Assembly: GCA_965112735.1 (NCBI GenBank)
Contig: OZ218954.1
Span: 1,612,001-1,676,000, forward strand
Origin: Phaeosaccion multiseriatum
Lineage: Eukaryota > Protista > Ochrophyta, other classes
Direction: 5' to 3'
DNA length: 64,000 bases
Part shown: in pieces, positions 41,015 through 54,700 of the stretch
Numbering within the stretch: the stretch's first letter is position 1
How the letters are laid out: each line of letters begins with the position of its first letter
The notes under the pieces: model-generated
The model's input: the letters and a program-made list of their open reading frames with translations, nothing else
Told to the model about the DNA's origin: nothing
Databases searched by the model: none
Position numbers and translations under genes: made by a program

Positions 41015-41732
41015 CATCTCTCTCTCTCTTCTCTCTCTCTCTCTCACTGACCTGCACATGTGCGATGTTCTTGGTCCTCTCGATGCCATCGCTGGCCCTT
41101 ACCGCTGCCAGAGCCTCGTCCACGTCCCCGGGGGCGTTAAACTTGCGCGAAATGAGCTCCTGCAAGTGTGGCTGCTCCTCAGCCGCAAGGAGAACAGGGG
41201 CAGTCGCCAGGCCTTCCTTCAGGTCGTTCAGAGCAGGCTTACCTGTGGAAAGGATATGGGATAGATACGGCAGGGAAGGGCCCCATTAGTTGCCGCTCTT
41301 TCATTCCCCACCAAGGCATTACGCTCCACTATGCTCCACTGCGCTCCCCCGCTGTTCCTCGCTCCTGTCCTCCTCGTCGCTCTTCCTCGCTTCTGTTCTC
41401 CTCCTCCTCCTCCTCCTCCTCCTCCTCCTCCTCCTCCTCCTCCTCCTGCATCTCCTCCTCCTCCCCCTCCTTCTCCTCCTCCCTTCACCCACCTAGACTG
41501 AGGGTACTCCCCTCGAAGTCCAGCACGTCGTCCACGAGTTGGAAGGCAAGCCCTACTCTCTTGCCGTACTCATGAGCGATGGTCTGTACGTCCTGCCCGT
41601 GATCCCCCAGCACCGTCACGGCCTTGCAGCTGTTGGCCATGAGGCTGCCGGTCTTGTAGTAGTTCTGTCGGGACGCCAACAGGGACAGTAGCAAATACAA
41701 CAGTAAACAACAGCACCACCACCACCACCAAC

Positions 41733-41763
<31 letters not shown>

Positions 41764-44240
41764 GCACCACCACCACCAACAACAACAACAACACCACCAC
41801 CAACAACAACAAGATGAAAAAACATGAGCGGCAACGGGGGAGGAACCACCCATCCAGACACCATCGCGGTGCACTCTTATCCCCCCCCCCCCCGTATCCC
41901 TTTCTCCGTCTCTCTTCCGTCCATACACGCGTCCTCCCCCTTCCACCCCTCCCATGTACCCGCGCCCCTCCACACTCTTCCCCTCTTCCCCTTCCCCTTC
42001 CGCCCCTCAATATGCCTCCATCTGCGTCCTCCTCCGTAGATGCCCCCTCCTCCTTCCGCGTTTCCCATGTGCCTCCATCTGCCCCCTTCCATATGCCTAC
42101 ACCCTCACCTTGCGTACGTAGTGCTCGAAGGCTCCCATACCATCCCCCATATTGATGGGCCTTATCTGCAGCACCTCTCCCTTGACGAGGTGCTCGATGA
42201 CCAGAGACATGAGTTCGGTGCTCTCGTGTGAGCGTAAGCGAGCAAGGCTCACGGAAGCTCGTGCGAGGAGGAAGTCGCCGGCCAAAATTGCGAGCTGACA
42301 GACAGACAGACAGACAGACAGGGAGAGAGGGAGAGAAGAGAGACAGAGAGAGGGAGAGAGAGAGAGAGAGAGAGAGAGGGATGAAGGGGAATGAGAGGGC
42401 CACGGAGAAGGAACCCAACATGGGCAAGGGAACGAACCCAACAAGGGCAAGGGAACGAACCCAACAAGGGCAAGGGAACGAACCCAAGAAGGGCAAGGCA
42501 ACGAACGATAGACAGGGAAAGCCTTGGCTGGCTGGGACGCCTAGATGCGTATTATGTTCCTCTCCTCTTAGTCCCTCCCCCCCCCCGCTCGCCCGCCCGC
42601 GCACATCTGGACCCCCGCCCTTTCCCTTCCATTGACCGAAACGCACACACGCATGCACGCACGCACACACGCATGTACGCACGCACACACGCATGCACGC
42701 ACGCACGCACGCACGCACCTTATTCCCAAACATCTTGTTGATGGAAGGGACTCCTCTCCGCGTGTCTGCCTTATCAATCACATCGTCATGGAAGAGAGAG
42801 GCCGTGTGGATCATCTCCGTAATCTCTGCAAGGCGCCGCTGTCCAGCTACCTGAAGCTCTGAGGTTGCCTCATCTTTTTGGCGATTACACGCATGGGCCA
42901 TCAGCATCACCATCGTGGGCCGAACCTTTTTGCCGTGGGAGGAGAGGGAGCAGTCCGTGAGCAGAAGTGACAGGAGCAACACGAAGGGGAGGGAGGAATT
43001 TTAAATGACTCACAGGAATCAACATAAGAATACGTATGGGGAGGGAGGAATCTAATGACCAACAGGAATCAACCTATAGGAATCAGCCTAAGAAATGCAT
43101 GTGGGGGAGGGAGGAGGCATGAGGTGGGGGCGGTAAGGGCCAACGTGACGATAGTGACTGATGCGCCTGGCACGGCCAACCCTTCGACTACCTGCCTGGA
43201 TGACTCACTCACATACTTACTGGCTGACTGGCAGACCGACTGACTGAATGACAGACTCTCCGACTAACCCTCCGCCTGCCACTGACTGACTGATTGACTG
43301 ACTGACTGACTGACTGACTGACTGGCTGACTGACCTTCTTCCCCAGGTCCACATCGAAGAAGTATTTGGCGGCTGCAGCGAGGACGGGATGGTCGGTGCC
43401 CAGCAGTTCCTGCCATAGAGGCATATGGGTGGGTAGGTAGGAGAGGGGGGCATCAAAGCAAGGCGACACTCATGGAGTCGCAGGCGCAGGCGAGTTGGGG
43501 CGACGTCACGAGCGTCAAGGCCTCGATAGCAGCAGCAAAGGCGAGGGAAGGTGATACATACTACGACTTCAAAACTTATCAATGCTGGAGAGAAGACTTT
43601 CCCTAGTTGGGCCCTACTACCTACTTCAAGAGCCAATCACGACATACTCAAAAGAAAAGGGCCCCTCTCCCACGCGCCCACGCACCTTGATGCCGTCGGA
43701 CAAGGCGCCAATCTCGGACTTGACAAGCAGGAAGGGGTCTGCATCCACGCTGGCGCCGTAGTTGCGCTGTAGGTAACGGGTGGTGGGCCTTTGCGAGGGG
43801 TCAATGTCGTACAGAAAGTCGTCTGTGCTATTGATGCACGTCAAGTCCTGAGCAGAGGAGATGGAGTGTGAGACCGGGATGGATGAGATGCGATACGATG
43901 ATAAATGCGGCTTGTGGACTTACAAAACTCGTTGTGCGTGCAATTGCTGAAATTATGTAAGCTTGCAATGCTCTCTTGTTTCAACGCCGCTCGCCCTTCC
44001 CTCTCCCTACGTATCCCCCCTCATAGCGGTAAGAACTCCTCGGTTTGTCCGTCCACACACACACACTCACCACAAGGCTGTCGCCGCTGCTGGACTTTGC
44101 ATATTTGCTTCCTCCCGGTCCGTACTCGTAGATACGCTGTATGCTTTCTCTGGCCACCCTTTCCTTGATTGAGTCCGCAAGGAAACTCAAGCTTCTCTTA
44201 CTGCCGCCCCGCTCACTCACACTGCTACTACTCCCGCTTC

Positions 44241-44903: not shown

Positions 44904-45144
44904 ATGGCAGAGGAGGATACCAGATACGATAGCAGAGAGGATGCTGCAGGTGCTGCAGCAGCACAATCGGCCACTCCAGTAGCGCCGAGCCCGTGGACCC
45001 CCCCTCCTTTGTCCGAGCAACCCTTTCACCCCACAGCTGAGATGAGGGCGTGGATGGATAGGAAACCGAAGACTGAGGAGGAGCTCGCAATGGCAGCGAA
45101 AGTCAGCGACTGCGTATTTTCTCTGAAAGGCATGGGGGTAAGAG

Positions 45145-45186
<42 letters not shown>

Positions 45187-45354
45187 TTCTCTCCCTCCCT
45201 CTCTCCCTCTTCCTCCCTCAGTTCCCTCATCTTCGCCCTCCTTGCCTTCCCTTCCGTTACCTTCCTCCTACCCCATTTTATCTCTCTTTAGTGTGCTATC
45301 CTTCTTTCCCCCTCCCTCCCTCCCTCCCTCCCTCCCTCCCTCCCTCCCTCCCTC

Positions 45355-45392
<38 letters not shown>

Positions 45393-45693
45393 TCCTCAAT
45401 TCCCTCGCCTTCTCCCTCATTCCCTCCCTACCCTTCCTCCTCCCTCGCTCGCCTCACTTCAGTATACTATCGTTGGCGTGGCGATTGGAACATTCATGGC
45501 CGTGAGGCAAAAGAATCATTGGCCAATGGTGACGGCTGGAGCCATTGGCACAGGCCTCGACATGTTCGATGCTTTCAAGTATCGATGTAGACCAGACATT
45601 GACGCGTGGGAGAACTACAAACTGGAGCGTATGAGGCGGGAGTTTGCCGGGGGGGGGCTACGGGAGGAGCGAGAAACACCAACGTCTCCGTAG
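44904..45693 (+). CDS. small hypothetical protein (154 aa) with two Gly-rich TM helices flanked by cysteines
   Basis: Exons 44904-45137 and 45463-45693 join in phase 0: ...SDCVFSLKGMGYTIVGVAIGTFMAVRQKNHWPMVTAGAIGTGLDMFDAFKYRCRPDIDAWENYKLE... Confidence 0.75.
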
Positions 45694-46567: not shown

Positions 46568-49500
46568 ATGTCAGTCCAGAATAATGAGCTTTGCACTCAT
46601 GGAGAGCATCTGGAGGCGCGGTGGCAGGCCGTAGAGATCGTGTTGTCGTATGTTGTGGTACGTCACCGGCAGCTACAAAGACGAAAGCATTTAGGAGAGG
46701 GCAGGGAGGAAACAGACAGTCTTCTCTGCCTCCTGCCTTCGCTCTTTGGGTGAACCTCTCGCCCTCTCGCTCCCCTCACTCACTGCCTCGTACCGCATTC
46801 TTTGTTCTGCAGGTGGTCTATGGGGCCTTGGGAGCGGTTGTGGTGCTTGACCACGTCCGCCTGTCGAGCGGCGGACTGAGCGTAAGGGCTGGGTTGTTCA
46901 AGTACCCATTTACCTTTGCAGCTACAAGTCTCGGGTCCACCATCTGGGCCATGCATTTTTGTGAGTACAGGAGGCAGGAGTAGTCATGGGCTGGGTCGTC
47001 AGGTTTTCATGGAGAGATTGTAGAGCTGAGTAGCCTGGAGTGTCTTATAGGCTTTTCCCCTTTGTCACAGCCTCTCCGCGAGCAAGGTGTTCTTCACCTC
47101 CTCCTCCTGGCTCCCACCTCCCTCCCTCCCTCCCTCCCTCCCTCCTTCGCCCTCTTCGCACCCATCGACATAGGGTTCAAACGCTCTATTTCTCCTCTGC
47201 TGCTCACCTCTACTGCTCCACTTTGGCCCTGCCCCCTCTGACCTCCTTGCTTCAGTGGGAATGAATGCTTTGCATCTCAGCAGCGCAAGCACGGGTGAAG
47301 AGGTGCCTCACCCCTTCAACCTGTGGATAACGCTGTTCAGTCTTGTCGCGTGCTGTGTGAGCATCAGGGTGGGCTTTGTGTATGGGCTGAAGGACAAGTA
47401 CTTCGGCAACCACCGGGGAATGCATCTAAAGGTGCGATAGGGAGGGAGGGCTCACGTTGGTTGATAGCGTTCGGCTTCGACGTATGAGCGAGCCCTGTCC
47501 AAACCGGGTATAGCCATGGCAGAGAAAGGGAAATTGAGCAGTCAGTCCAGGGTGAACCAACAGATTCCCCAACATTCTGGACGTCGTAAAGGGCATTCTT
47601 ACCTCCTCTTCACTTTCCCTTCTACTGCCTTGTACCTATCCGAATGACAGCGCTTCCTGCTGGCCAAATACAGCTCAGATATCAAAGGTCTGCGCTCTCA
47701 TAGGAATGCGCTGGTGAGTGAGTGAGTGAGTGAGTGGGTGAGTGAGGGGGTGGGTGAGTGAGTGAGTGAGTTGAGTGGGTGAGTGAGTGAGAAAGTGAGT
47801 GAGAGTGTGTGAGTGAGTGAGTGAGTGAGTGAGTGAGTGAGTGAGTGAGTGAGAGTAATGGGTGGTTGGTTGGGTGAGTGAGTGAGTGAGTGAGTGAGTG
47901 AGTGAGTGAGTGAGTGAGTGAGTGAGTGAGTGAGTGAGTGAGTGAGTGAGTGAGTGAGTGAGTGAGTGAGTGAGTGAGTGAGTGAGTGAGTTGAGTGGGT
48001 GAGTGGATGAGTGGGTGAGTGAGTGAGTGAGTGAGTTGAGTGGGTGAGTGAGTGAGTGAGTGAGTGAGTGAGTGAGTGAGTGAGTGAGTGAGTGAGTGAG
48101 TGAGTGAGTGAGTGAGTGAGTGAGTGAGTGAGTGAGTGAGTGAGTGAGTGAGTGAGTGCGTGAGTGAGTGAGTGAGTGCGTGAGTGAGTGAGTGAGTGAG
48201 TGAGTGAGTGAGTGAGTGAGTGAGTGAGTGAGTGAGTGAGTGAGCTATACTGTAGAGCGAGTGAGTGAGTGAGTGAGTGAGTGAGTGAGTGAGTGATTGA
48301 TTGAGTGAGTGAGTGAGTGAGTGAGTGAGTGAGTGAGTGAGTGAGTGAGTGAGTGAGTGAGTGAGTGAGTGAGTGAGTGAGTGAGTGAGTGAGTGAGTGA
48401 GTGAGTGAGTGAGTGAGTGAGTGAGTGAGTGAGTGAGTGAGTGAGTGAGTGAGTGAGTGAGTGAGCTATACTGTAGAGCGTTTCTTGTCCGGTAGATGTC
48501 GTGTGGTAACGTCATACACGTACTAGCGTGGAAGTATACTGCGACATGCTTCTCAATGATGTCGTATTTAACTGAGGAGGGAAGAAGAGAAAGGCAGAGC
48601 TCTATTAAACCCGCGTCCATCGCCCTTCTGTGTCTCTCGCTACCCTCCGCAGATCATGGCTTACTTCAGCCACTTGGAATTCATCGCGGGATCAGCCGTT
48701 CTCATCGCACTAGGAGTCCTCGTCATGCATTTCTCAGGTGAAGTGTCTCGTCAACAACGTGCTGCTGTTGCCTCTCCTCTGCTGTGCTCGCCGCTTTCTC
48801 TTCCTTTTGCTCAAGTGTAGTAGAGGTGGCCTCAGTCACACGGGGAGCCGTGCTTATCCCTCCTGGTGCCATGCTCTCCATGCTGTCGTTGCGACCTTCT
48901 GGCCGGGTAGTTGCTTCTTGCTTGTTTATACCCACCTCCAGGACTGGCCCATTGCCACTGCTTTGCGGCACACCATCCCCTCATGATTACTCACTCCTCT
49001 CTGTATCTCTCTCGCAATGTCTCTCTCTTCCTCCTCCGTCTATCTCGTCATCTCCCCCCCCTCTCTCTCCATCTCTCCTATCTGTCCCCCTTGTTACCTG
49101 CTCAGGCATGGCGTCCATGGCAGGCTCATTGAAACTGCATTGGAACTACAGCATCGTGGCTCTGAGTGTGGTGATTGCGCTGGTGGTGGCGCTGGCGGGC
49201 ATGTGGATCATGTATCGTCTCTTGGTTTGGAAACCCACCCTGGAGCTGCTAAGGCTAGCCAGCGCTTTAGTCATCGGCCTCGCGGGTACGTCGTACTCAT
49301 ATCTCTGAGCAGTCAGGAAAAATTTGGCAGCTGCTTCTCTACCATCGTCATGTCTTTCTTCTCTTCTCTTGTGCTCGTTCGGCTCAATTCTCTCGCGCCG
49401 CGTGCATTTTCCCTCCTCGAAGGGGAGCGATGCAATGCTCTGCTCTTGGGGAGCGAAGCAACTAACTGATGTCACTCTGATGTCACTCATTGACGAGCTA

Positions 49501-50837
49501 CCCGCGCTCGACTCGCGCTCATCATCGCGCCTCTGGCTACCTACCACTTGGCTCACTCTTTTGCTTCTTTGCCTCTCTCTGCCCCCCTCATCTCTTCAAC
49601 TCGCGCTGCGGGTTAACTTGCTTCGGGTGCATTGGACTGGCGGCTTGGCTGATTGGCTGATTGGCTGATTGGCTGATTGGCTGATTGGCTGATTGGCTGA
49701 TTGCTACGCCACACACATGCACGCCCACACGCACGCACGCCCCCATGCACAGCCTGCTCCATGCACTACGTCGGTATGTTCGCCGTGTCCTACACCTGCG
49801 ATGCCTCCGGGGAGGGTTGGCTGTACAACTCCTTCCTCTGGGAGGGAGGTATGGAATTTGACTTTGTCCTGGTCACACTCTCGCTCAACATGGCCATTGC
49901 GGCCATTCTAAGTGTGGCCATTGATCTCCGGCGCAACTTTCTCGGCCTGTCCGATACGAACTTTCAAACTGTGGCTGCCAAAATGCGTTCGCACCAAGCC
50001 TCCGCGAACCCTTCCAGCCCCCGGCTTCAGCAGATGGCGAAGCATGTGGTGGTGCTTGGGGCCAATTTGAGGTCTTGGAGCGCTGCGGCGAAGGCTGCCA
50101 CAGAGCAACTGCGAAGGGGGAGCAAGTCAAAGGTTGTGCCTTGTTGCACGGAGGAGGCGGAGGAGGAGGGGCGGGGGCAAGAGGGAGTTCAACAAGAACA
50201 ACAACAAGAAGAACAAGGAGGAGGAGGAGGAGGAGAAGAAGGAGGAGGAGGAGGAGGAGGAGGAGGAGGAGGAGGAGGAGGAGGAGGAGGAGGAGGAGGA
50301 GGAGGAGGAGGAGGAGGAGGAGGAGGAGGAGGAGGAGGAGGAGGAGGAGGAGGAGGAGGAGGAGGAGGAGGAGGAGGAGGAGGAGGAGGAGGAGGAGGAG
50401 GAGGAGGAGGAGGAGGAGGAGGAGGAGGAGGAGGAGGAGGAGGAGGAGGAGGAGGAGGAGGAGGAGGAGGAGGAGGAGGAGGAGGAGGAGGAGGAGGAGG
50501 AGGAGGAGGAGGAGGAGGAGGAGGAGGAGGAGGAGGAGGAGGAGGAGGAGGAGGAGGAGGAGGAGGAGGAGGAGGAGGAGGAGGAGGAGGAGGAGGAGGA
50601 GGAGGAGGAGGAGGAGGAGGAGGAGGAGGAGGAGGAGGAGGAGGAGGAGGAGGAGGAGGAGGAGGAGGAGGAGGAGGAGGAGGAGGAGGAGGAGGAGGAG
50701 GAGGAGGAGGAGGAGGAGGAGGAGAGGGAGGGGCGAATATAGAAGAGCCATCACGGGAAGGCGAAGGGGAAAAAACGAAAAATACGTCACTCATGACGGC
50801 CAATGAGAGTCTCCCCATGCCCTTGTGCGGAGAATGA
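46568..50837 (+). CDS. stand-alone MHYT-domain integral membrane sensor protein (7 exons)
   Basis: Exons 46568-46657, 46813-46960, 47256-47431, 47651-47713, 48653-48737, 49106-49286 and 49753-50837 join in frame. Three MHYT-type repeats IWAMHFLGMNAL, VLVMHFSGMASM and ACSMHYVGMFAV, each with flanking helices (EIVLSYVVVVYGA, WITLFSLVACCV, YSIVALSVVIALVVA). Confidence 0.88.
47714..48464 (+). repeat. (GAGT)n array beginning at the splice donor of MHYT intron 4
   Basis: The intron starts GTGAGTGAGTGAGT... and continues ~750 bp. Confidence 0.97.
50217..50723 (+). repeat. (GGA)n trinucleotide expansion, ~161 uninterrupted units (50241-50723), in frame as poly-Gly
   Basis: Visible array inside the last MHYT exon. 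Confidence 0.95.
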
Positions 50838-50869
50838 CTTGGAGCTCGAGTCCTGCGGTCACTGTACCG

Positions 50870-50912
50870 CACATACACGCAAACGCACACGCCAATACAC
50901 ACGCGCAAACAC

Positions 50913-50994
<82 letters not shown>

Positions 50995-51091
50995 ACACAT
51001 ACACACACACATTCACACGCACACACACACGCACACACACACACACACATTCACACGCACACACACACGCACACACACATACACACACACA

Positions 51092-51154
<63 letters not shown>

Positions 51155-51172
51155 ACACACATGCATGCACAC
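50870..51172. repeat. (CA)n array 3' of the MHYT gene
   Basis: Visible array. Confidence 0.95.
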
Positions 51173-51732
51173 GCTGACTGAGTCAGCTGTTGGTTGTAAC
51201 CTCCTACCCTGGGTTAAATCTACGTGAGGAGAGGGGGGAGAGGTCAACACATACCAAAAGTAGGCAAAGCCTTGCACATTTTTTTAATAAAAAAAAAAAA
51301 AAAAAAAAAGTATGATTGCCTTTATATACACACTCTTGTCTGTGCGCGATTGTCGTTCTTTCGCAAGTCTGCGGTCAGGCGATCCCCTACCGACTCGACA
51401 CGGGGCGTCCGCCAAGCCGGCGGGTCCCTCAGTGGAACCGCTCCTTGCTCCTGCCCCTCTCACCCTGCGCGCTTCACCAGCACTGGCCAACACGCGTCTT
51501 CTTTATCTTCTCCTCAATAATTCTGCCCACCAATCGTCCCTTCTCTCTCTATCTGTCTGCCCCTGAAGCATATACATCCACGTGCAAAGGGAGCAAGGAG
51601 AGGTGGAGTGCGCGACGACAAACACAAGTCACCACATCTCCATCCCTCAGCACACATCATGACTGCCAATGCCAACAACTGTCATCTTGTGTCGAGGTGT
51701 GTCAGGCTCGACCGGTCCGAACGCCCCGCCTT

Positions 51733-54700
51733 TCATTCGGGCCGTGGTGCCGTGTACACCCCACGGGTGCTCTTCCATTCCATCATCTCCTCCTCCGATC
51801 GCAACAACACGGATGGCTCCTCAGCCTCCCTCACCGCAGCCGCCTCCTCCCTTGGGTCGAATTCATTGGCTTCCTCGCCCCCCTTGCTGCCCTCCTCTGC
51901 TGGCGGTGAGTTCGGCTGGCGCAATGCCTGTGCTGCCTCCTTTCCGTCACCATCACCACTATCATCACCACCATCACCTTGCTCTTCGCTCGGGGTGTGC
52001 GACTGACTGGCAAAACGCATGGAGAGCTTCCTCCTGCCCGCTCCACTCTTGGCGAGATACGTGTCAAACACCTCAAGCACTTCCTTCCTCGTCAACGCCT
52101 TGTACGAAGCGGCCTTGCGATACCGTCGCGTAAAGTCGTAGGTACGGGAGGAGATGGCACCCCACAGGCGATTGCCCTCGTTGGCCAGGCTGTCCGAGGG
52201 CTGCAGGAGACTATTGATGAGAGTGCCCACGTTCTTCTGGAAGTCCTCCTCCTCGAGGCTGGCGAGCTCCTCCCGGAAGGTGAGCAGCCAGGCTTCGATT
52301 CGATTGTCCAAATAGACTTTGGAGTAGAGTACACGGCGGCGGAGAAATGTTCACAAGCGCAGCGAGAGGGGCGGGAGGGAGGGAAAGAAAGAGTTCTGGC
52401 GTCACAAATGGAAAAAAAAGGGGGGGAGCATTACCCCTTTGAAGCCGCCAATGGCGTCCGGAAATAAGCTTGGTCAGCTTCTCCGATGCCCACCCCCCTC
52501 TCCTCTTCTCTCCACTCCTTGACTCTTCTCCCCGCTTCCCTCCTTTCCTCACCCCTCCTTCCTCCCCCTCTTGTCTCCTTTCCTCGCCTATCCTTTCCTC
52601 TCTGCCTCTCTCCTCTCCTCTCCTCTCCTGCCTCCTCTTCTCTGCTTTACTCTTCTCTCCTTTCCTCTCGTCTTCCCCCTCCCCCCCTCCCCTCTCTTCT
52701 CTCGCTCTTACCTGGGCCGTGATTGGGGCTCTGGACGAGGACAGAGAAGCCCAAGACGCTAGCTGGGACTGGACCTCGCCTAAAGAGGGTCGAAGGAGGA
52801 GGAGAGAGAGAGAGAGAGGGGGGGGCTGGGTGTTGGTACAATGGTACCCATGCAAGAAAAGCTCTGTACTCTCCACTGACGTACTACTTCCACTGACTTA
52901 CTTCTGAAAGGCCCACACAAGATACCCGAGCTGCTCCTCCGTGCGTAATCGGTTGTGAGCTGAAGCCTGCGCCAATCTACCGATAACGTCCAGCGCTGCC
53001 TCCATCTGGAGTCCGGCGTCTCCCGGGCCGATCTGAACAAGGCGAACGGTTAGGCGGAAGAGAAGGTCAGGCATATGGTAAGGCCAATCGTCAAGAGGAG
53101 GAGGAGCGTCAAGAGGAGGAGGAGGAGGAGGAGGAGAAGGAGGAGGGGGTGGAGGAGGAGGAGGAGGAGGAGGACGACGACGAGGAGGAGGAGGAGGAGG
53201 AGGAGGAGGAGGAGGAGGAGGAGGAGGAGGAGGAGGAGGAGGAGGAGGAGGAGGAGGAGGAGGAAGAGGAGGAGGAGGAGGAGGACGAGGAGGAGGAGGA
53301 GGAGGAGGAGGAGGAGGGGGAGGAGGAGGGGGAGGAGGAGGGGGAGGAGGAGGGGGTGGAGGGGGGGAGAGAAGAAGAAGGAGGACGAGGAGGAGGAGGT
53401 GACTCGCACTCGAAGGCCCACGAACGCAAGGGGTACTGGGGTGGGGCTTTCAGACAACCAACTCACCTGTAGGTGCACCTCCGTGGCGGAGTTCTTCTCT
53501 TCGCTGGAAGGGTGCGTCATAGAGAGCACCACAGGCCCTCGTCCCGTCTCCGCATCCTCTTCCTCCGAGGCGCCGCCATTTGTGAGCGGCAACTTGATGG
53601 TGTGTCGAGTGGGCACGAGGGCCTCTGGCAGCACACGGGGAAAGGCGAGCTTTGTCTTGAGTGTGCCCACGAGCTCTTGGGCCTCCTCCTGTGGGTTGGG
53701 TTGGGTTGGGTTGGGTTGGGTTGGGTTGTGTGGCGTTGTGTTGGGTTGGGTTTCGTATTTGATGCACGCAGCCCGCACAACACAACCCGAACCACAACCA
53801 CCCGTGCAGTACGCAAACACGCACACACGCACATACACCCACACGCACGCACGCACGCACGCACGCACGCACCCCAACACGCACGCACCCACCCACCTTT
53901 CCGATATTGCCGTAACTGAACACCTCTAGACGCATCTCGTCGAGTGCCTCTTGGACGATTCTCGCCATGGGACCGGGGCTAAACCTCTCTGGAGAGTTCA
54001 CCACCTCCCAGCAGTCCTCATTGGAGAACACGTCCGCCTCCGTAGCCTGGTGGGAGGGGCGGAGCAGTATTTTTTATTTTCATATACAAACAGGAAGGAG
54101 AAGTAGAAGCAGCACAGCACCAGAAGAAGAGCAGCGGGGGTGAGAGCAGGAGCGAGGGTGGCAGCGAGAGCAGGAGGAGGCAAAAGCAAGCGCGTTAGTA
54201 AGTGTGGAGAGGTACAGGCTGCTGTCCCCTCCCTCCCTCCACCCCTCGCTCGTACCACCAACTCGCTCACCTGTCTAAAGTAGTGCGTGACCATCTCATG
54301 AGGCTGCTTCTTGTCGAACGAAGCGTAAGCTCTTCTCATGCTGTCTCCGCTGTTGGCAAAGCGCGTGAGAAGCATCTTCTCTCGAACACTGAGGTCCTTT
54401 TCGGTCTTCTCTGCGGCGACAGCGTACTCTTGGAGAAGAACGCGGATGTGCTCGAGAACCTTCTCCAGCAGGAGAGGCAGCCTGACAAAACAGTGGGAGG
54501 GATGGGTCAGGAGAGAGGGAGGGAGGGAGGGAAGAGGGTGTGCGTGTGTGGAGTGAGGAGCAGTTTGCGAGACAGGATAGCACAGAGAGAGAGAAGCAGG
54601 ACAGAGAGGCAAAGACGCATAGGAAACAGAGGGAGAGAGTCAGAGAGACATAAGAGTGAGTAGAGGGGAAGCAGGGCCGCCAATACCACATCGAATCCCA

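Follow-up and report, generated by a model that had tools for sequence, protein, structure and literature searches.

An intron-rich gene predicted to encode a stand-alone MHYT-domain membrane protein in the alga Phaeosaccion multiseriatum

Introduction

The MHYT family was defined in bacteria, and its domain (Pfam PF03707) is reportedly due to Galperin et al. 2001. This report concerns a putative eukaryotic member of the family, a gene at positions 46568-50837 of a stretch of 64,000 nucleotides (the window) that covers positions 1,612,001 to 1,676,000 of contig OZ218954.1 of the ochrophyte alga Phaeosaccion multiseriatum (GenBank assembly GCA_965112735.1).

Among the closest described systems is CoxC of Afipia (Oligotropha) carboxidovorans, an MHYT-LytTR protein whose copper-dependent response to carbon monoxide (CO), with oxygen (O2) as antagonist, was shown in 2024, and which is the sole MHYT protein with an experimentally shown ligand and copper requirement (PMC11347149). 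According to the same study the MHYT domain has seven helices and occurs as a single domain or fused to others in more than 2000 species, several fungi among them. Filamentous fungi (Fusarium, Neurospora, Aspergillus) carry 1-9 PF03707 genes per genome (PMC9048145). AFUA_5G10140 of A. fumigatus is entered as an 'MHYT domain signaling protein' in a review on receptor-mediated signalling, whose appendix table lists integral membrane proteins as candidate receptors (PMC3576715), and an MHYT histidine kinase is reported from Taphrina (PMC4007546). Our search of the literature for MHYT in algae or diatoms found none.

Results

Gene structure and splicing

The gene lies on the forward strand and is modelled as seven exons and six introns, each intron of the form GT..AG, and the joined coding sequence of 1827 nt is in frame and terminated by a stop codon (Table 1). 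The donors of introns 1-6 read GTACGT, GTGAGT, GTGCGA, GTGAGT, GTGAAG and GTACGT, respectively. In the spliced product the motifs MHFLGM, MHFSGM and MHYVGM occupy residues 77-82, 184-189 and 251-256; the third, in exon 7, is the only one intact without splicing, and the first and second are restored by it. The six-frame translation of the window contains only five MH[FY] tripeptides, three of which fall within the exons of this gene. The correspondence of exons and motifs is confirmed and lies far beyond chance: three MH(F/Y)xGM repeats and six introns, two of them cutting the motif, had been described in an earlier sequence-only reading of this DNA, and both the in-frame GT..AG model and the six-frame motif scan bear this out. 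The guanine-plus-cytosine (GC) content of the core coding sequence by codon position, 0.55/0.41/0.70, is as expected for coding sequence in this genome. Exon 4 has good splice sites, and it has no bacterial counterpart and no support from homology; as it runs from phase 0 to phase 0, the reading frame would survive its skipping.

MHYT family membership

When the exons were submitted singly, exon 6 (59 residues) and exon 7 passed the cut-off of 21 bits of the Pfam MHYT model PF03707, with 23.8 and 22.2 bits, respectively. The bacterial set used for comparison comprised 120 MHYT loci from species-representative genomes, picked by a two-motif DNA pattern, from which the open reading frames (ORFs) were extracted. 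The spliced algal protein matched 118 of 119 bacterial MHYT proteins with up to 65 bits (phmmer), and with exon 6 alone the best score for a single bacterial protein was 31.6 bits. Against a profile of 79 complete bacterial MHYT domains, built without the algal sequence, the spliced protein scored 127.9 bits (E 1.8e-41, Z=1). The match falls into two parts, residues 12-121 and 169-273, on either side of an insert; they are colinear and ungapped over junctions 1, 2, 5 and 6, whereas the unspliced ORFs gave 38 bits at best. This colinear match of the spliced protein, set against the far lower scores of the unspliced ORFs, is the main support for the gene model, the predicted junctions of which rest on homology rather than on transcripts. 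A full-length profile made from exon fragments aligned to bacterial templates was rejected, since the internal repeats make MAFFT pick the wrong repeat.

All ten columns that are invariant in a 42-sequence bacterial alignment (A2) are retained in the alga; they comprise four residues of motif 1 (W, M, H, M), one Ser of helix 3, four residues of motif 2 (M, H, G, M) and the H of motif 3, while the identity to the protein of the bacterial locus L015 is 28% (69/248). The MHYT domain proposed earlier is upheld by the Pfam matches of exons 6 and 7 taken singly and by the score against the bacterial seven-helix profile. Judged by homology, the seven-exon gene is a genuine nuclear MHYT-family gene of a stramenopile alga.

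As the domain is mainly bacterial, contamination of the assembly by bacterial DNA had to be weighed. The six spliceosomal introns, two of them within motifs, speak against it, as do the composition and the microsatellites, which fit the host, and the flanking genes, which are eukaryotic and intron-containing, while the bacterial and metagenomic relatives are all uninterrupted ORFs. Contamination is refuted by the intron structure, and its probability is negligible.

Predicted topology and the basic insert

Seven hydrophobic segments are found in the spliced protein (residues 19-42, 60-82, 99-121, 165-189, 200-224, 233-256 and 283-305), and the three motifs sit at the C-terminal ends of segments 2, 4 and 6. 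The net charge alternates from loop to loop: one face takes the acidic N-terminus and the loops after the motifs, the opposite face the basic loops and the tail. From hydropathy and loop charge we infer a topology with the N-terminus outside, the C-terminus in the cytosol and the motifs at the extracytosolic ends of helices 2, 4 and 6. An AlphaFold model of the bacterial relative L015 (m2b1219740af3, L015:3980-4738), with a predicted local distance difference test score (pLDDT) of 91.4 and a predicted template modelling score (pTM) of 0.88, also has seven helices, with the motifs at the C-terminal ends of helices 2, 4 and 6 and short strands in the outer loops. The domain had been taken to span the membrane six times, and this count has to be corrected to seven in view of the L015 model and of the published description (PMC11347149).

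Comparison of the L015 model with solved structures gave no significant match (Foldseek E >=0.1; VIA-align Z <=6.1), and structure and literature searches found no solved MHYT structure, so the MHYT fold appears to be experimentally unsolved. The fold of G-protein-coupled receptors (GPCRs) was considered and rejected, as no GPCR chain compared with the L015 model exceeded a Foldseek TM-score of 0.31 (E >=0.1) or a VIA-align Z of 5.4.

The sequence-only reading had noted a basic cytosolic insert between repeats 1 and 2. The gene model has this insert at about residues 122-164, between helices 3 and 4, a place where bacteria have about 10 residues; it is missing from at least half of the 79 bacterial domains. 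The alga also differs from the bacteria in two small extra inserts in the outer loops.

Tail, gene ends and repeats

The profile alignment starts at residue 12, which indicates that the N-terminus is complete. In the tail of about 300 residues Pfam found no domain, and the sequence from the stop codon to the next gene, 50838-51732, holds only (AC)n and an A-run; that next gene is convergent. Downstream of the (GGA)n repeat in the last exon no pyrimidine-rich acceptor was found. It might be held that missed exons encode an output domain and that the protein is not stand-alone at all, as the 3' end rests on the model and RNA-less models of eukaryotic genes are often incomplete. However, the complete N-terminus, the bounding neighbours (the upstream gene on the same strand stops at 45693), the tail blank in Pfam and the lack of a good acceptor past the repeat together make a hidden output domain unlikely, and we consider missed exons of this kind very improbable. 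The earlier statement that no output domain follows stands.

Two long microsatellites fall in the gene. The (GTGA)n array of about 187 copies (47714-48465, about 750 bp) begins exactly at the GT donor of intron 4, so that GTGAGT, the donor consensus, recurs within it hundreds of times. The (AGG/GGA)n array of about 170 copies (50216-50724) keeps the reading frame of the last exon, where it would specify a run of about 161 Gly; ahead of it, the GC content at third codon positions (GC3) of the tail is 0.71. Either the poly-Gly tail is genuine, or the array points to an error in the modelled 3' end or in the assembled repeat. Inside intron 6 (49645-49703) there are 7.4 copies of TTGGCTGA. Past the stop codon, (AC)n with about 130 copies (50871-51165) and a 21-nt A-run (51287-51309) occupy most of the space up to the convergent gene.

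Relatives and origin

No close relative came out of the database searches. Word-index protein searches with exon 7 and exon 6 gave no matches, and an exhaustive HMMER search of 1.84 billion representatives with exon 7 gave no true relative; its three matches, Ig-repeat (immunoglobulin) and low-complexity proteins aligned to the tail, were rejected as spurious. Pattern scans of bacterial genomes and metagenomes with exon 7 and a tblastn search against plasmids returned nothing, and no contigs encoding the exon-7 ORF are on record. When metagenomes were scanned with a small exon-6 alignment, 15 loci came out. All of them are ORFs of bacterial type without interruption, which reached 44-70 bits with the spliced protein, and none is nearer to the alga than the bacterial genome sample. 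In the ESM Atlas the two clusters nearest to exon 7 were MHYT proteins of Ascomycota (254 and 353 residues) with weak scores of 0.80 and 0.76, and the leads for exon 6 were weak and consisted of generic membrane fragments only; a fold search in the atlas with the L015 model returned no eukaryotic cluster rows. Since even genuine MHYT proteins of bacteria score no more than 22.5 bits with exon 7 alone, these blanks exclude close orthologues (about 40% or more identity over the last exon) and not distant ones.

A maximum-likelihood tree was made from the 79 bacterial domains and the alga, so that the comparison covers bacterial domains only. The algal end branch has 3.35 substitutions per site against a median of 0.45, the best identity of the alga to any bacterial domain is 30%, and no supported set in the tree includes the alga. 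In view of the very long branch, the low identity and the lack of a supported bacterial sister, these sequences do not point to a recent transfer from any of the lineages sampled.

The long branch and the failure to find an orthologue would also be in line with a gene that is silent or decaying and has microsatellites spread through its tail, or with a model that is partly wrong in exon 4 and at the 3' end. The tract of 161 Gly in the last exon, the 750-bp microsatellite at a donor and the finding that no run recorded as RNA is among the four that contain the locus point the same way. Against this, the ORF is intact over seven exons with every splice site canonical, GC3 is strongly biased, and the retention of all ten invariant residues at 28% identity is something that neutral decay would not produce. 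We regard decay or a faulty model as quite unlikely.

Stand-alone MHYT proteins in bacteria

The sequence-only reading had assumed that MHYT is normally fused to an output domain. This is not borne out by our sample, in which 30 of the 94 complete bacterial MHYT ORFs have 330 residues or fewer and were counted as stand-alone, and a single-domain form is stated in the literature as well (PMC11347149). At three Streptomyces loci, where the stand-alone MHYT gene encodes 257-289 residues, a gene for a protein of about 850 residues with NIT and HATPase_c domains follows 58-114 bp downstream on the same strand (L054:4582-7101, L112:3029-5548 and L096:2289-4877), and the arrangement looks like a conserved pair of MHYT protein and putative nitrate-nitrite sensor kinase. 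In Micromonosporaceae (L023, L061, L072) a stand-alone MHYT gene comes directly after a helicase gene (DEAD/DSHCT, HelY-like) that has the same orientation.

The frequency of stand-alone forms in bacteria bears on a further explanation, in which the algal gene encodes a genuine MHYT protein that does not signal and is instead a membrane protein binding or handling copper, or an accessory subunit of some other membrane complex, with its Met and His sites serving metal chemistry. The algal protein has no output domain and no known partner, and in the literature that was searched no function was found described for any stand-alone MHYT protein. On the other hand, most members of the family are fused to signalling domains (histidine kinase, GGDEF/EAL and PAS in the atlas rows; PMC11347149), and the stand-alone copies of Streptomyces adjoin a sensor kinase gene. 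A non-signalling role seems to us a doubtful but serious alternative.

Gene neighbourhood

The convergent gene downstream may be M16/insulinase-type peptidase-like, as its last exon gave a near-threshold match (Table 1). Elsewhere in the window (41485-43000, reverse strand) there are ORF pieces with FHDDVID..D and LVDDVLD, typical of polyprenyl diphosphate synthase, separated by low-complexity introns.

Table 1. Exons, selected introns and neighbouring genes of the predicted MHYT gene, in positions of the window (TM, transmembrane helix).
Feature	Position	Strand	Content
Exon 1	46568..46657	+	start codon, 18-residue N-terminus ahead of TM1 (predicted extracytosolic), first half of TM1
Exon 2	46813..46960	+	remainder of TM1, loop on the cytosolic side, TM2 as far as M-H-F of motif 1; ends in phase 1
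Intron 2	46961..47255	+	GTGAGT..CTTCAG; interrupts motif 1 as MHF / LGM, phase 1
Exon 3	47256..47431	+	LGM of motif 1, 7-residue insert within outer loop, TM3, beginning of basic cytosolic insert
Exon 4	47651..47713	+	63 nt; 21 basic residues, middle of cytosolic insert; phase 0 to 0
Intron 4	47714..48652	+	opens with (GTGA)n microsatellite
Exon 5	48653..48737	+	end of insert, TM4 as far as M-H-F-S of motif 2; ends in phase 1
Intron 5	48738..49105	+	GTGAAG..GCTCAG; interrupts motif 2 as MHFS / GM, phase 1
Exon 6	49106..49285	+	GM of motif 2, TM5, cytosolic loop, most of TM6; highest conservation among the exons
Exon 7, whole	49753..50837	+	domain part, cytosolic tail and stop codon
Exon 7, domain part	49753..49925	+	motif 3 MHYVGM (49761-49778), acidic outer loop, TM7
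Exon 7, cytosolic tail	49926..50837	+	about 90 domain-free residues, acidic/Gln stretch, about 161 Gly, 38 residues, stop
Upstream gene	44904-45693	+	small, two or more exons, stop at 45693; neither exon with a Pfam match
Downstream gene, last exon	51733-52311	-	convergent; PF22456 (PqqF-like C-terminal lobe) at 26.4 bits, cut-off 27.5

Discussion

Judged from its family alone, the algal protein is a reasonable candidate for a gas or metal sensor. We lean, by a modest degree, towards a stand-alone seven-helix MHYT membrane protein that acts as a copper-dependent sensor of a small molecule and works with a separately encoded partner. By analogy with CoxC, the Met and His residues would hold copper in the outer half of the membrane, and binding of a small molecule, which may be CO, nitric oxide (NO) or O2, would shift the packing of the helices. 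Since there is no fused output domain, this shift would be read by the separately encoded partner, and contact would likely be made by the enlarged basic loop that joins helices 3 and 4 in the cytosol, by the tail on the same side or by both. It may reasonably be supposed, rather than taken as a result, that signalling runs through such a separate partner; a precedent is given by the stand-alone MHYT genes that stand beside a sensor kinase gene at the three Streptomyces loci.

Several points weigh against this favoured reading. Copper binding, the ligand and the partner are all inferred. The signal of NbdA, another MHYT protein, is still called unknown or debated (bioRxiv 10.64898/2026.03.20.713172), so that 'gas sensor' is established for one member of the family only. 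The fourth position of the motif, the T of MHYT, is L, S and V in motifs 1-3, respectively. The searches of proteins, genomes and metagenomes found no close orthologue. The four sequencing runs that contain the locus all come from one sample, all retain the introns and none is recorded as RNA, and exon 4 and the poly-Gly tail may be absent from the real protein.

A more far-reaching reading makes the gene the founding example of an old non-fungal eukaryotic MHYT branch, in which a copper-based membrane receptor for NO, CO or O2 in a photosynthetic stramenopile would pass its signal through the eukaryote-specific basic loop and tail to a separately encoded cytosolic partner. A kinase with a NIT domain would then be a candidate for that partner, mirroring the pair of MHYT protein and NIT kinase in Streptomyces. 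We hold this reading to be unlikely.

NO and oxygen signalling in algae are known physiologically, and to our knowledge no membrane receptor has been established for either. CO sensing by CoxC was shown only in 2024, and the MHYT members of fungi are annotated, none of them studied. The algal copy, intact and with none of the invariant Met, His and Trp residues lost although it has diverged so far, is therefore a concrete, testable candidate, and its alga-specific cytosolic loop and tail mark possible docking sites for an output partner. Were the copper-based receptor branch real, algae would gain a candidate gas receptor; were the gene silent or non-signalling, the result would be the routine annotation of a divergent family member.

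The interpretation given in the sequence-only reading is thus upheld only in part. The uncharacterised eukaryotic sensing system that it proposed is not a new kind of eukaryotic system, as MHYT genes are already annotated in fungi (PMC9048145, PMC3576715, PMC4007546). Since stand-alone forms are common in bacteria and fungal MHYT genes are annotated, neither a stand-alone nor a eukaryotic MHYT protein is new as such. What is new, as far as the sequence comparisons reach, is an algal, intron-rich and very divergent member of the family.

Among the known systems, CoxC resembles the predicted algal protein in its seven-helix MHYT domain, which is N-terminal in CoxC, and in its three Met/His/Tyr(Phe) motifs, which in CoxC are close to the outer membrane face and in the alga are predicted to be so. 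The two differ in that CoxC carries a fused LytTR DNA-binding output and the alga has no output domain, whereas the alga has about 40 extra residues in a basic cytosolic loop, a long low-complexity tail and six introns; this likeness is drawn from the description of CoxC. NbdA and MucR of Pseudomonas aeruginosa share with the alga an MHYT membrane input, and unlike it they are fused GGDEF-EAL enzymes of cyclic di-guanosine monophosphate (c-di-GMP) metabolism. Pseudomonas MHYT proteins of about 700 residues (L022, L027, L063) are among the best phmmer matches of the algal protein (62-65 bits). With GPCRs, which also have seven helices and an N-out/C-in orientation, MHYT proteins share the helix count and the predicted orientation only. 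The fungal MHYT proteins are like the alga in being encoded by eukaryotic nuclear genes, in having an MHYT domain and in being functionally uncharacterised; they belong to a different eukaryotic supergroup and are compared here by annotation, not by sequence. The bacterial stand-alone MHYT proteins (L015, L042, L106 and L120, and L054, L112 and L096 of Streptomyces) consist of the domain only, with 250-330 residues in the same seven-helix layout, and score 46-69 bits against the spliced algal protein. They differ from it in having a loop of about 10 residues at the position of the basic insert, no long tail and at most 30% identity. The pairing of some of them in an operon with a NIT-HATPase_c kinase is an arrangement impossible for a eukaryotic gene.

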